A stretch of 64,000 bases of DNA. Origin: Macrostomum lignano (Eukaryota). This document shows positions 4,218 to 52,136 of this stretch, piece after piece. The stretch lies in assembly GCA_002269645.1 (NCBI GenBank), contig NIVC01001978.1, positions 1-64,000 of the forward strand, read 5' to 3'. The translations under genes were made by a program, and so were the position numbers. The notes beneath the pieces were generated by a model. It saw only the letters and a list, made by a program, of their open reading frames with translations, searched no databases and was not told where the DNA came from. Numbering within the stretch: position 1 is the stretch's first letter; each line of letters starts with the position of its first letter.

Positions 4218-4381
4218 AAATCGCTGGCTAGAGAGGAGTGACGCGACGTCTTCGGCGAAACGTCAAAATCCGAGTCGGAGCGGTAGAGAAAAGACTCGCG
4301 CCTCTGGTGAGGCAGGTGGTGGAGCACCAGGCCGCCGCTAGCAGGATGGCCCTCGCCTCGTGGGCAGCGTTCTCGTCGAAG
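4218..4381 (-). CDS. PDE4: cAMP-specific phosphodiesterase 4 (dunce-like), first common exon encoding the start of UCR1
   Basis: Translation [39 protein letters not shown] matches the PDE4 UCR1 signature ([30 protein letters not shown]), including the RRES PKA site. Donor TT|GTAAGT at 4217. Acceptor atgcag|C TTC GAC at 4382 mirrors the conserved C-TTT-GAT (FD) exon start, but there is a frame break inside the exon (see findings). Alternative in-frame acceptor at 4338. Confidence 0.9.
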
Positions 4382-5577
4382 CTGCATGATTGGAGAGCAT
4401 TGTGGTGTGTGGAGAAGCGTTTGTCGCGGCTGGTAGAAACAGTTTATTGTCACAAACAGAACGAGTATGAGCAACGCCTCTCGGCGATATCGTGTCACCA
4501 CAATCACCGAGGCAATTCTGCCTCGCAGCTAAATATTAAAGTTAGCAAGTTTATTATACTTGTAGTAAAAAATATTAGTGCCTCAACTTAGTTTTCACGT
4601 GACCTTTCAAAGATGGTTTATGTGCCTGTATTTGGTTTCCAGCTAACGCCTGAAGAACAGTCGATGGGAAGATTCTGTAACTTTCTTTCCTCCTTTCGTC
4701 CTCTTAAGCCTCAGCCTGATCTATCACTACTACCCCATCTATATACCGCTTTCTTATCGGCAAATAATGATGCAAAGTAATGCAGCAGAGTACAGAAGCA
4801 GTGCCCGGCTGAGCAGCTTCCGTGAATAATCCGATCAGGCACTGAGAAGGAGTAGGGGGGGGGGAATCGATGGGGCTTAAGTCGTCAAACCTCGATGGAT
4901 CCCTAAGACTTTAGAGCCCATACCAACATGGGAAAATGCCTGCCCCCTCCTCCTCTCGAGCAAAGCCGAACAATTTCTCGCGCTTGAAGTGCTCGCGATA
5001 TAAAACCCCGGCATAATTCAGGCAACGGCAGGATTCTCAAAGAAAACTTTTTCTCCACGAGTGCGGGTTTCCCGTCTGATTGATTGATGCAAAGCTTCTT
5101 GAGGAATAGAAGAGAAGCTGAGCTCACTCAGGCTAATTCCGTTTCAATATTGGCTTGTGGAACTTGGCTAAGAATTTTCCTTGTTGCAAATATTCTTACA
5201 AACGAAGATTCTGGAACTTCTTTGTCAAGCAGTCAAAAAAGCGTGATGTTTTGCAAGTTTAATCAAATTTTCTAGGGCCTGCCAAGTATTAGGAAAATAA
5301 AAAAGTTTAATAATATGCAGAAAGGGGCAGCTTTGAAAAAAATCGACCCGGAACCTTGAAAGTTTGAGTTGTGAAAATGCTGCAAAAGTTGCTTTCGCAG
5401 CTATCAGAAACCCAGTTATGTGACGAATGGTAACTGTGCCATGCTTAGAAAAGTAGTTTTGAGACAGTATGAGCCACCAGTAACCATAGGGTAAAGCTCA
5501 TTACAGCACACTTAACACTGTACTATCTCACCACCTCATTTAGGCTATAGCGCTATACACGACATCAGCCAACTAAC

Positions 5578-5879
5578 CCCAGCAACTGTCGAGTCCTCGT
5601 CACTTTCAGCGTACTAGACGTGAGCACAGCGTTCGGATTTACGACGCTCGATAGTGGCACCATTGACTGTTGTACATTTTTTACTATCCTTACTCGACGC
5701 CTTCGAGTAGTTTTCTTTGTCACCGTGATGTCCCCGCCGGCGGTCGGTATCACGGACGTCTCATAGTGCACCAGCTCTTCTGGTGGCAGCTCCTCGGTTT
5801 CAGTCCATTCCCTGACTGACGCTGGATCGATGGACGGATCTGACGATTTTGAATCCTCCAGTAGCGGCGTTAGACTCAT
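5578..5879 (-). CDS. Candidate alternative N-terminal exon of PDE4 (MSLTPLLEDSK...TRTRQLLG)
   Basis: True ATG at 5879, 100 open codons, phase-2 donor GG|GTTAGT at 5577; non-repetitive, GC-rich island. No recognised homology. Confidence 0.55.
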
Positions 5880-6629
5880 TCTGAGTCTCGACTAGCAAAG
5901 ACGTTACTAGCAACAACCAGCCAACTGTATCGCAAGTTGTTCTCTTCTTTCGACGGCTACTTGCGTTGCCTTTTCTCTTGACTCATTTTAGGCCAGTGAA
6001 AAGCATTCAGCATTTCCTATTGGTTGCTGACTTGCTGTATTTGACTGCAGTTTGAACTGTGCCCAACTGAACATTAAGCGGCCTCTGTGAGCGCGCTGGT
6101 GTATCGTGGAGCTGTACCTCGAGTGAATAGTCCCAATCGCAAATTCATGCAGTAGAAATACGCTTGGGACCACCCCCCTCTCCCGGATCGGAAGTGCTAG
6201 ACTCGTACCACTAGCATAACGATATGCGGCTGTAATGAACCTTACTGTCTGTGAAGCCACTGCCACTTTGGCAACACACTGTCAGTGTTAATCCCGCTCA
6301 TTAAGAATCGATTTTCAACTAATAAATACACATGATCGAGGAACGAGGCTTAGTGGAGCGCATCAAGCGCATCATACTGGGAGTTGTTCAGTTTCAGGGA
6401 CCTTCGACTGTCTTGTGCTATTTTAAGCTCCAAACTTACAAACAAACGTAGGTTACGACTGTAACCTCAAAAGCATAAACCCGGACTAAAAAACCGTTAG
6501 GCTCTGAAAGGTGTCTAGCGAAGCTACCTAATGCGAATAGTATGTAAAAAGGCAGCTAAGAACTGTAGAAGTGGATGTCATTCTATCTCACTGAATCGAA
6601 AAGCAGTATGCCGTTAAAGGATCAACGAT

Positions 6630-6813
6630 TGCTTACGGGGGAATTGCTGAGATTTCAAGGCTTACTGGAGGAATTGTTGAGATGTCAAGGCTTACTGGAG
6701 GAATTGTTGAGATGTCAAGGCTTACTGGAGGAATTGTTCAGATGTCAAGGCTTACTGGAGGAATTGTTCAGATGTCAAGGCTTACGGGGGGGGAATTGCT
6801 AAGATGTCAAGGC
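6630..6813. repeat. 30-bp minisatellite (GAATTGTTGAGATGTCAAGGCTTACTGGAG), ~6 copies
   Basis: Direct tandem repetition; explains the LLEELLRCQG ORF. Confidence 0.95.
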
Positions 6814-49283: not shown

Positions 49284-50340
49284 ACACTAGCTGACACAGG
49301 CAGACACTAGCTGACACAGGCAGACACTAGCTGACACAGGCAGACACTAGCTGACACAGGCAGACACTAGCTGACACAGGCAGACACTAGCTGACACAGG
49401 CAGACACTAGCTAACACAGGCAGACACTAGCTGACACAGGCAGACACTAGCTAACACAGGCAGACACTAGCTAACACAGGCAGACACTAGCTGACACAGA
49501 CAGACACTAGCTAACACAGGCAGACACTAGCTGACACAGACAGACACTAGCTAACACAGGCAGACACTAGCTGACACAGACAGACACTAGCTAACACAGG
49601 CAGACACTAGCTGACACAGTCAGACACTAGCTGACACAGGCAGACACTAGCTGACACAGGCAGACACTAGCTAACACAGGCAGACACTAGCTAACACAGG
49701 CAGACACTAGCTAACACAGGCAGACACTAGCTGACACAGACAGACACTAGCTAACACAGGCAGACACTAGCTGACACAGGCAGACACTAGCTGACACAGG
49801 CAGACACTAGCTGACACAGGCAGACACTAGCTGACACAGGCAGACACTAGCTGACACAGGCAGACACTAGCTGACACAGGCAGACACTAGCTGACACAGG
49901 CAGACACTAGCTAACACAGGCAGACACTAGCTAACACAGGCAGACACTAGCTGACACAGGCAGACACTAGCTAACACAGGCAGACACTAGCTAACACAGG
50001 CAGACACTAGCTGACACAGACAGACACTAGCTAACACAGGCAGACACTAGCTGACACAGGCAGACACTAGCTGACACAGGCAGATACTAGCTGACACAGG
50101 CAGACACTAGCTGACACAGGCAGACACTAGCTGACACAGGCAGACACTAGCTGACACAGGCAGACACTAGCTAACACAGGCAGACACTAGCTGACACAGA
50201 CAGACACTAGCTAACACAGGCAGACACTAGCTGACACAGGCAGACACTAGCTGACACAGGCAGACACTAGCTGACACAGGCAGACACTAGCTAACACAGG
50301 CAGACACTAGCTAACACAGGCAGACACTAGCTGACACAGG
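49284..50340. repeat. 20-bp minisatellite (CAGACACTAGCTGACACAGG), ~53 copies
   Basis: Near-perfect tandem. Confidence 0.98.
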
Positions 50341-50892
50341 CTAGCAATATAATTCAACCAGATAAAGTGAAAGATGATGAGAAGAAGGCAGGAAGAGACC
50401 CGAGAGACAGACTATAGCGAAAGACCGTAAGCAATCTCTTCCCTAGAAGAAGCAGGACTCATCAGTCTCTTCTCTTCTTCACTCTGTCAGCTTTGTTGGG
50501 AATATTTTTCTAGAATTAAAATATGAGTGGCGGTTATGACAGGGCCTTAGAGATGAAGGGCCTGCGGGGCTGGGTGGGGGCTAAGTGACAGATGATGTTG
50601 CGTGTGCGTGACCATTCCCCCTTTAAGTTGACCAGCCTCCCTGATCCTTCACTTCCCAAATCAATATAGCAATCTATGTGCCTCAGGGACCTAAATCTGC
50701 TTGGTCTCTTTTCTCTATACAGATACACGAGAATATCCGGCTGACCAATACAACTGAGTTTTATTGTTGGCCATATAAAATTATTGAGAAATTTTGCAAA
50801 TGAATAATGAATAATATTGGAAAATATAAATTTCCAACACAATCAGTTGGAAAGCAATCATTTTAATTGCTATAAATCTTAACTGCCTCTCC

Positions 50893-51575
50893 AATCTCAC
50901 CAGTCATCTCTATCAGATCTCTCACCTGTGATCTTAATCTCTATCAGATCTCTCACCTGTGATCTTAATCTCTATCAGATCTCTCACCTGTGATCTTAAT
51001 CTCTATCAGATCTCTTACCTGTGATCTTAATCTCTATCAGATCTCTTACCTGACATCTCTATTAGATCTCTCACCTGTAATCTTAATCTCTATTAGATCT
51101 CTCACCTGTGATCTTAATCTCTATCAGATCTCTTACCTGTCATCTCTATCAGATCTCTCACCTGTGATCTTAATCTCTATTAGATCTCTCACCTGTGATC
51201 TTAATCTCTATTAGATCTCTCACCTGTGATCTTAATCTCTATCAGATCTCTTACCTGTCATCTCTATCAGATCTCTCACCTGTCATCTCTATCAGATCTC
51301 TCACCTGTGATCTTAATCTCTATTAGATCTCTCACCTGTGATCTTAATCTCTATCAGATCTCTCACCTGACATCTCTATCAGATCTCTCACCTGACATCT
51401 CTATCAGATCTCTCACCTGAAATCTCTATCAGATCTCTCACCTGACATCGCTATCAGATCTCTCACCTGAAATCTCTATCAGCTCTCTCACCTGACATCT
51501 CTATCAGATCTCTCACCTGAAATCTCTATCAGATCTCTCACCTGACATCTCTACCAGATGTCTCACCTGTCATAT
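50893..51575. repeat. 22/31-bp minisatellite (ATCTCTATCAGATCTCTCACCTG[TGATCTTA])
   Basis: Tandem units of two lengths; the minus strand reads CAG|GTGAGA or CAG|GTAAGA in each unit. Confidence 0.96.
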
Positions 51576-51609
51576 CTAACTGATTCGCGTCTCAATCGAA
51601 ATCCCTCAC

Positions 51610-52136
51610 CCTTCAATCAGTCTCACCCTTCCACCTCCGGCTGGTCCATGCAATCCCGCGGGCGCAACCTTGGCGCCGCCGCCTCCTTCCCTAGCAGGAC
51701 TCGGCGCCCTCTGTCCCGCATGGTCGGCGCTGGAACCGCCGGGACTAACAGCCGACGTGCTCGTTGTCTTGTCGCACACGGTCTTGAAGGCGATCAGAAC
51801 TCGCCTCCGTTTGGAGCTGCTGTCGGAGCTGCTGTCGCCAGGTGCGGTTGAAGCCGTCACGAATGTCACCGACTTCTCGGATCTCAACGGGCGAAGCTCC
51901 AAGTTGTCGGCGCTGGCAGCCCGAAACTCGCGCGGCAGCAGCCTGGCTGGCGACCTTGAATCCGCTGGAGCTTCGTCGTCCGAGTCTTCGTCGTCGTGTC
52001 TCGGTAGGTCTTTGTCTATGACATCATCCTTGGCGGCGCCGGTGCAACAGCAGCAGCAGCAAAATTTTTGCAATAGAGCCGTTTGTTGACGACCTCGTCT
52101 AGCGGTTGGCGTCGCCCTGCGGGATGCGCGTGACAT
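51610..52136 (-). CDS. Candidate most distal N-terminal exon of PDE4 (MSRASRR...KFCCCCCCTG...RLIE[G])
   Basis: ATG at 52136, 175 open codons in a GC-rich unique island, phase-2 donor GG|GTGAGG at 51609 (also a phase-0 donor AGG|GTGAGA at 51626). Assignment to PDE4 rests on position, strand and phase only. Confidence 0.55.

Follow-up and report, generated by a model that had tools for sequence, protein, structure and literature searches.

The stretch of DNA analysed here, the first 64,000 nucleotides of Macrostomum lignano contig NIVC01001978.1 (hereafter the window), is metazoan genomic DNA and contains the 5' part of a long-form, dunce-type invertebrate PDE4 gene on the minus strand. An earlier note on this DNA had proposed that open frames scattered over some 48 kb of it are alternative N-terminal exons of this gene, and here we weigh these islands individually and as a set. 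Coordinates are positions in the window, a slash within a sequence marks a splice boundary, and the exon to which the islands would have to be joined is the following:

Minus strand, 4218..4381: first PDE4 UCR1 exon, common to the long forms, with acceptor AG at 4383-4382 and donor GT at 4217-4216.

On the minus strand, exon 4381-4218 is flanked by cag/ and /gtaagt, and the translation of 4336-4218 holds the protein kinase A (PKA) site RRESF within the UCR1 signature. Matches were found to exon-level open reading frames (ORFs) from other animals (P0001-P0004), to the UCR1 of human PDE4B (PDB 4wzi, chain 4wzi_A), and to 80 PDE4 loci recovered from metagenome contigs, which are cited below with the prefix L. 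This is the first UCR1 exon of a PDE4 gene. The Pfam scan did not report PDE4_UCR for it, no additional PDE4 exon was detected in 1-4217, and the gene continues off the low end of the window. An in-frame ATG lies at 4387-4385, just upstream of the acceptor and in the UCR1 frame.

The junction phase of this exon was then compared among the 72 loci that have an FDxEN-type start. The acceptor AG was placed exactly 1 nt ahead of the F codon in 70 of them, which gives phase 2, and the two exceptions were spliced transcripts. Because of this constancy, phase 2 is the ancestral phase in which the UCR1 exon is entered, and it is conserved. The acceptor in the window, cag/C TTC GAC GAG AAC, has the same position and phase, and the proposal that a phase-2 donor is needed to join it is right as a property of the family. 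Four of the contigs labelled as metagenome (L010, L052, L026, and L017) were found to be spliced PDE4 transcripts that span UCR1, UCR2, and the catalytic domain; they display real invertebrate junctions between an N-terminus and FDVENG.

Upstream of the acceptor, eight minus-strand islands were considered as its partners:

Minus strand, 5578..5879: predicted alternative coding first exon, 100 amino acids plus GG/, 1.2 kb upstream of UCR1; the best-supported island.
Minus strand, 7035..7186: doubtful ORF, 50 amino acids; weak donor AAG/GTACCG, score 0.5.
Minus strand, 8296..8480: doubtful ORF, 61 amino acids; good donor CAG/GTAGGT, score 6.1.
Minus strand, 20710..21035: predicted alternative coding first exon, 108 amino acids, Q/H-rich; it ends ...YLNRRRHSCNT + TG/gtagga, giving Cys-FDEN if spliced.
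Minus strand, 30715..30914: predicted alternative coding first exon, 66 amino acids; it ends ...NKNRRHTLAMS + TG/gtgaga, giving Cys-FDEN if spliced.
Minus strand, 36348..36598: probable alternative coding first exon on intrinsic signals, 83 amino acids, containing WRKRRHLLRISKS.
Minus strand, 41648..41814: probable exon without an initial ATG, either an internal exon or a short first exon.
Minus strand, 51610..52136: probable most-distal coding first exon, 175 amino acids, with tandem donors at 51627/51626 (phase 0) and 51610/51609 (phase 2).

All eight have a length of 2 mod 3, a single open frame, and a GT directly after it, so that the open frame and phase-2 GT described for each island were confirmed throughout; an ATG start, claimed for most, was found in seven, the exception being 41648-41814. 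The donors read gttagt (5577), gtaccg (7034), gtaggt (8295), gtagga (20709), gtgaga (30714 and 36347), gtgagc (41647), and gtgagg (51609), with scores from 0.5 to 6.1. Steps in G+C (GC) content mark the ATG and donor ends of the islands. No paralogy was found among them beyond poly-Q, and they are not a duplicated exon array.

The strongest evidence was obtained for the island at 5578. HMMER matched it to P0005, an ORF that a different species carries on the 1.7-kb Logan contig L004, with E = 4.8e-9 and 62% identity over 48 amino acids. The ORF of L004 also starts with ATG, and its end, GG/GTAAGG, corresponds to GG/GTTAGT in the window, the same phase-2 donor. Nucleotide identity between both sequences was 0.69, 0.63, and 0.34 at codon positions 1, 2, and 3, and different codons were used at 21 of the 34 identical residues; judged by this comparison, the island is a real exon that codes for protein and is under purifying selection, and its phase-2 donor is conserved. 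The conserved peptide reads ELPPEE..VIPT.GG.ITVT..RRRRVR, and a search of JGI metagenomes with the alignment of 5578 and P0005 found no relatives.

We infer the link between this island and PDE4 from its position, 1.2 kb upstream on the same strand, and from its phase. An alternative is that some islands, chiefly this one, are exons of another gene nested in the PDE4 5' region or overlapping it. No known PDE4 N-terminus and no Pfam family matched the conserved peptide, which occurs in 0 of 84 PDE4 loci within the available upstream flank; both points would fit such a gene, as would the lack of a UCR1 exon within 1.2 kb downstream in L004, a contig too short to show synteny. However, 5578 lies on the PDE4 strand, close upstream of the UCR1 acceptor; the ATG and the phase-2 GG/ donor, which fits the conserved acceptor, are kept in both species; and exons of any gene other than PDE4 were not detected in the window. 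We therefore regard a nested gene as improbable.

The islands at 20710 and 30715 carry a motif known from a vertebrate PDE4 first exon. In both, RRH[S/T] is placed 3-4 residues before a Cys codon that is split after TG, so that RR-H-S/T is no more than about 5 residues away from a phase-2 donor and would be followed by Cys-FDEN. Human PDE4D3 runs on in a similar way, as ...IC-FDVDNG. Its N-terminus (residues 1-14) is MMHVNNFPFRRHSW (PMC2173774), and its PKA site, Ser13, promotes binding to mAKAP (PMC7770493). The N-termini of both islands match this PKA-site N-terminus, and their phosphorylation is a prediction. The GC content at codon positions 1, 2, and 3 (GC1/2/3) was 0.69/0.33/0.69 in 20710, with GC steps at both ends, and 0.62/0.44/0.70 in 30715, whose donor, GTG/GTGAGA, scored 3.7.

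Related mini first exons were found upstream of UCR1 at other loci. L058 and L059 contain MPASKPKRRHSWIC (...RRHSWIC), with a phase-2 donor about 9.3 kb upstream of UCR1; L035 and L036 contain MLPGSRCPSRRHSCI (..SRRHSCI), also with a phase-2 donor, about 0.8 kb upstream; and L001 contains MGMLLSLCDRRKHTDIPQL-TG/ (...RRKHTDIPQL-TG/), about 0.85 kb upstream. The RRHSWIC and RRHSCI exons are clearly homologous to PDE4D3. Moreover, the spliced metatranscriptome contigs showed RK.S-type sites near the FDVENG junction, such as IRKLSEPVFS/FDVENG, and the RRHS junction module appears to be widely conserved among animals. The motif itself was counted five times on the minus strand and never on the plus strand of the window, with about 2-3 expected per strand by chance; RRH[S/T] is no rarity in six-frame translations, and the information lies in its placement at the junction alone. 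RR.S mini-exons upstream of UCR1 numbered 5 in sense and 3 in antisense orientation among 52 loci, a difference that was not significant.

The islands at 36348, 41648, and 51610 are plausible exons on intrinsic signals, namely GC3 bias, TATA boxes, and donors. At 36348, GC3 was 0.71 vs. 0.47 and 0.58 at the other codon positions, the ATG coincides with a rise in GC content from 0.27 to 0.63, a TATAAA is found at 36683-36678, 85 nt upstream of the ATG, and the donor is TGG/GTGAGA. The island at 41648 is among the top GC patches of the window (0.65) and ends at the donor GAA/GTGAGC. Tandem phase-0 acceptors of the NAGNAG type, cag/cag/GAC, are located at 41815/41812, and this island, which lacks an initial ATG, may be internal; the other option is a 15-amino-acid first exon starting from the ATG at 41690 (MVISAPRIQITSSR). 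Its ERRHSDHG is similar to RERHSAHG in the first-exon ORF of L048.

The most distal island, 51610, is the patch with the highest GC content in the window (0.69) and has a good donor. Its two tandem consensus donors, AGG/GTGAGA in phase 0 and AGG/GTGAGG in phase 2, are 17 nt apart, and 64 nt ahead of the ATG there is a TATA-like box, TATATAAG (52200-52193). It is a speculation that the phase-0 donor at 51626, together with the phase-0 acceptors of 41648, would allow a two-exon N-terminus. A (TGC)n run at 52058-52075 on the minus strand encodes six Cys in a row after a basic N-terminus (MSRASRRATPTARRGRQQTALLQKFCCCCCC); if translated, it would resemble a palmitoylation or membrane-anchor cluster, and it may be a microsatellite only.

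The two islands closest to 5578 fared differently. No homologue of 7035 was found in the protein search or against the 84 PDE4 loci, and 8296 is overlapped by a 147-amino-acid ORF on the plus strand. A match of 8296 in L083 was rejected as due to chance, as it lacks an ATG and lies downstream of the UCR1 exon of that locus. Both islands are probably chance ORFs. The caution that the sites at 7.0 and 8.3 kb could be false was borne out, as they have no coding signature and are individually at chance level. The earlier note had also listed two weaker sites. At about 21241 on the minus strand, a perfect donor, TG/GTGAGT, does close an open frame of 60 amino acids, some 200 nt ahead of the ATG in 20710, and this frame has no ATG; the site could be a non-coding leader exon or a product of chance. 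Nothing was found at 26359.

We consider it fairly probable that the window holds several promoter-specific PDE4 first exons over about 48 kb, each spliced singly to 4381 and giving long isoforms. At least three islands, and probably five or six, would be alternative coding first exons; their splicing to 4381 is predicted, as is the use of 36348, 41648, and 51610. The proposal that all the islands are alternative PDE4 N-terminal exons thus held in part: conservation or the junction motif speaks for 5578, 20710, and 30715, the intrinsic signals for 36348, 41648, and 51610, and 7035 and 8296 look like products of chance.

Several observations weigh against these alternative first exons. Any ORF that ends in G plus a stop codon mimics a phase-2 donor, and GC-rich patches favour long ORFs, which introduces a selection bias. 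Codon periodicity was absent from 51610 (GC1/2/3 of 0.59/0.63/0.63) and from both doubtful islands, GC2 exceeding GC3 in 7035, where the donor is also poor, and being the highest value in 8296. A word-index search with 51610 and 36348 returned 316 candidates, none significant, and when the islands and the masked window were compared with the 84 PDE4 loci by tblastn and tblastx, only UCR1 and L004 matched. Finally, the frame from FDxEN to RRESF is interrupted, and entry at 4381 in phase 2 meets a stop inside the exon as assembled. The Q-, H-, and C-run matches in the tblastn and tblastx comparisons were low complexity. The Pfam scan of all islands gave sub-threshold noise only, and a protein search with the eight islands concatenated gave no match among 8000 candidates, a weak negative because P0005 was also missed; over such an evolutionary distance, word-index searches of proteins have little sensitivity. 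The suggested check for conservation in related species was positive in a second species for 5578, gave short-motif similarity only for 20710, 30715, and 41648, and retrieved no homologue of 36348, 51610, 7035, or 8296.

These points bear on the possibility that most islands arose by chance as ORFs of GC-rich patches, with G+TGA or G+TAG mimicking a phase-2 donor, and that one or two are real exons. Every end in GTGA or GTAG imitates a donor by construction; about 26 GC-rich patches are present in the window and only eight are islands; 51610 has flat GC1/2/3 values and ORFs on both strands; 7035 and 8296 have no coding signature; and no homologue was found for 36348 or 51610. On the other hand, the frequency of donor-like ends differs between strands. 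Among ATG ORFs of at least 50 amino acids in unique sequence, which served as the control set, a stop preceded by G was seen in 13 of 34 minus-strand vs. 2 of 24 plus-strand ORFs. With UCR1 left out, 7 of 33 minus-strand ends had G on both sides of the stop (GTGAG or GTAGG) vs. about 4.4% expected (P ~5e-4), as did 1 of 24 on the plus strand; with the local G content set at 0.25-0.30, the P value for this excess was ~0.004-0.025. In a phase-unbiased test, which begins at donor-like GT sites and asks for an upstream ATG ORF of at least 50 codons, the minus strand gave 13 sites in phase 2 vs. 6 in phase 0 and 4 in phase 1, and the plus strand gave none in phase 2 and two each in phases 0 and 1. 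Moreover, the five highest GC patches of the window are UCR1 and four islands, and the GC1/2/3 of the UCR1 exon (0.64/0.46/0.74) is resembled by the GC3-biased periodicity of 20710, 30715, and 36348. Collectively, the island set moderately exceeds chance. The purifying selection on 5578 and the RRH[S/T] motif placed in two islands as in known PDE4 first exons also stand against this possibility, and we regard it as unlikely.

The interruption of the UCR1 frame was traced to a short segment, and a second potential acceptor was found downstream of it:

Minus strand, 4366..4372: net -1 frameshift site in the UCR1 exon; frame +1 gives FDEN up to about 4369, and frame 0 gives RCPRGEG...RRESF from 4369.
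Minus strand, 4337..4339: alternative weak acceptor, ctag/C GGC GGC CTG, which in phase 2 would give an in-frame exon of 120 nt.

The first 13 nt of the exon read FDEN in the phase-2 frame, and from CGC TGC CCA (4369) the homology continues in the other frame, so that similarity to FDVEN is found in one frame and similarity to RSPLEG in the other (RCPRGEG resembling RSPLEG, followed by GLVL..RRESF). The exon is 164 nt long (2 mod 3) in the window vs. 183 nt (0 mod 3) in L001 and L002, and one added base at AAC/CGC (about 4369-4371; the slash here marks the point of addition) would restore a continuous frame. The 1-base frameshift after FDEN would thus be an indel of the assembly or of the allele. 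It would break automated gene prediction at this locus, and in-frame joining in phase 2 requires either its correction or the use of the acceptor at 4337. From that acceptor, phase 2 reads GGLVLHH... in frame; the tract upstream of it is purine-rich, and the site is not conserved in L048. Apart from this acceptor, the other way out of the frameshift is a genuine phase-0 use of 4381.

That last option would mean that the assembly is correct, that the islands are out of frame, and that the partners of the UCR1 exon are phase-0 donors such as 51626 and 5693, or exons outside the window. The two closest UCR1 exons that we found are relevant to it, those of L048 and L049 (JAAUXU010108226 and JAAUYM010012349), which share with the window a signature including [DE]FD[VA]SPK..SRHSS[IL]ASD. 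As in the window, these exons are GC-rich and their surroundings are rich in simple repeats, and L048 also has a short upstream ATG exon with RERHS. The sites concerned are:

L048, 4165-4278 and 4801-4967: phase-change sites, an intron phase change in a conserved gene.
L049, about 7586-7839: phase-change site of the same kind.

In the window, the UCR1 exon has no stop in frame 0 from its acceptor onward; in L048 and L049 the acceptor is in phase 0 and the exon length is 2 mod 3; and L048 has a matching phase-0 first exon, an upstream 38-amino-acid ATG ORF containing ..TRERHSAHG.. that ends at a phase-0 donor (MFRCLNFTMMTRERHSAHGCFSRRSTLSSQKSALYYNY/GTGAGT). Furthermore, phase-0 consensus donors are present inside 51610 (AGG/GTGAGA) and 5578 (CGA/GTAAGG), the latter also in L004. 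However, the acceptor of L048 and L049 has moved by 4 nt (CCAG/GAC), with loss of FDVEN, whereas the window retains the ancestral AG and C TTC GAC GAG AA, in which FDEN is readable in phase 2 only. In view of this DNA alignment, neither locus supports reading the window in phase 0. In addition, 5578 continues past its putative phase-0 donor with 18 nt that are conserved at the protein level (VR[IV][VM]KN) and show synonymous or conservative changes, indicating that they are coding; 20710 and 30715 contain no phase-0 donors; and ORFs with a phase-0 donor were not enriched. A phase-0 junction at 4381 is for these reasons improbable. Across species, the donor phase seems to follow the acceptor type (0/0 in L048 and 2/2 in the window).

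The islands are embedded in an intron landscape that is unusually repeat-dense. Tandem repeats make up about 50% of the 64-kb window, in line with the description of the islands as spread among minisatellites over some 48 kb, and the unique, non-repeat part has a GC content of about 44%. We observed about 30 unrelated minisatellite families with unit lengths of 11-43 bp, (ATAG)n/(ATCT)n tracts of 0.3-3.8 kb each at at least eight sites, and a pure-purine GA-rich tract of 1.4 kb. The tRNA and Rfam scans of the window gave no match, and an exact look-up of its ORFs in protein and contig collections retrieved none. Examples of tandem-repeat stretches are:

22487-26332: tandem repeat.
11021-13610: tandem repeat.
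60204-63296: tandem repeat.
38480-39903: tandem repeat.

In the arrangement that we favour, first exons scattered over this minisatellite-rich intron of about 48 kb would each have their own promoter, ATG, and N-terminal peptide. Every one of them would stop two bases into a codon and be joined, one at a time, to the acceptor at 4381; the UCR1 exon would supply the third base, C, and then read FDEN.... The resulting long isoforms would have UCR1, UCR2, and the catalytic domain in common and differ in the N-terminal peptide with a targeting or regulatory role, and two of these N-termini would set a PKA-type RRH[S/T] site at the junction, as does human PDE4D3.

A multi-promoter 5' layout is an established architecture of PDE4 genes, known from flies and mammals. 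The same organization is seen in vertebrate PDE4D and PDE4A-C, where unique N-terminal exons are joined to a common (C)FDV[D/E]NG exon upstream of the PKA site RRESF, and the N-terminus of PDE4D3 given above is mirrored by ...RRRHSCNT(C) and ...RRHTLAMS(C) in the window. In contrast to vertebrate PDE4D, this is a single invertebrate gene with a compact 5' region of 48 kb vs. hundreds of kb; and unlike in vertebrate PDE4, the introns are largely minisatellite and the FDVENG start is reduced to FDEN, frameshifted as assembled. As to dunce, no N-terminal sequence similarity was detected, and insect-type UCR1 exons (L005-L009 and L014) are clearly more distant than those of L048 and L049.

Eight conserved long forms of PDE4D have been reported (PMC2929239), and dunce, with several promoters, yields at least eight transcripts that fall into groups by the unique N-terminal region preceding UCR1 and UCR2 (bioRxiv 10.64898/2025.11.29.691281). 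The statement of the earlier note that N-terminal diversification from multiple promoters was already established agrees with both reports. The suggestion that the repertoire at this locus is unusually large did not stand, as six to eight N-termini are on par with the transcripts of dunce and the long forms of PDE4D, and the description of the N-termini as unrecognised has to be qualified: 20710 and 30715 are PDE4D3-like at the junction, and apart from RRH[S/T] the peptides are indeed unrelated to vertebrate N-termini.

What is new here is limited to a further lineage, a conserved N-terminal peptide not described before, that of 5578, and introns filled with minisatellites. The result supplies a concrete gene model for annotation and is otherwise an ordinary finding. 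A more far-reaching version, in which a single invertebrate PDE4 gene has at least six promoter-specific coding first exons in 48 kb and two of their classes, RRHS and the ELPPEE peptide, are ancient, is possible, and we hold it to be rather doubtful. If true, the RRHS junction regulatory module would predate the split between protostomes and vertebrates, and the version as a whole would be at odds with the published view that PDE4 N-terminal diversification is mainly a mammalian elaboration. The N-terminus of a PDE4 enzyme decides with which partners it associates and at which place in the cell it degrades cyclic AMP (cAMP). Multi-promoter N-termini, the RRHS motif, and a new peptide in a further invertebrate would show that the compartmentalisation of cAMP has an old origin and is not specific to vertebrates or flies.

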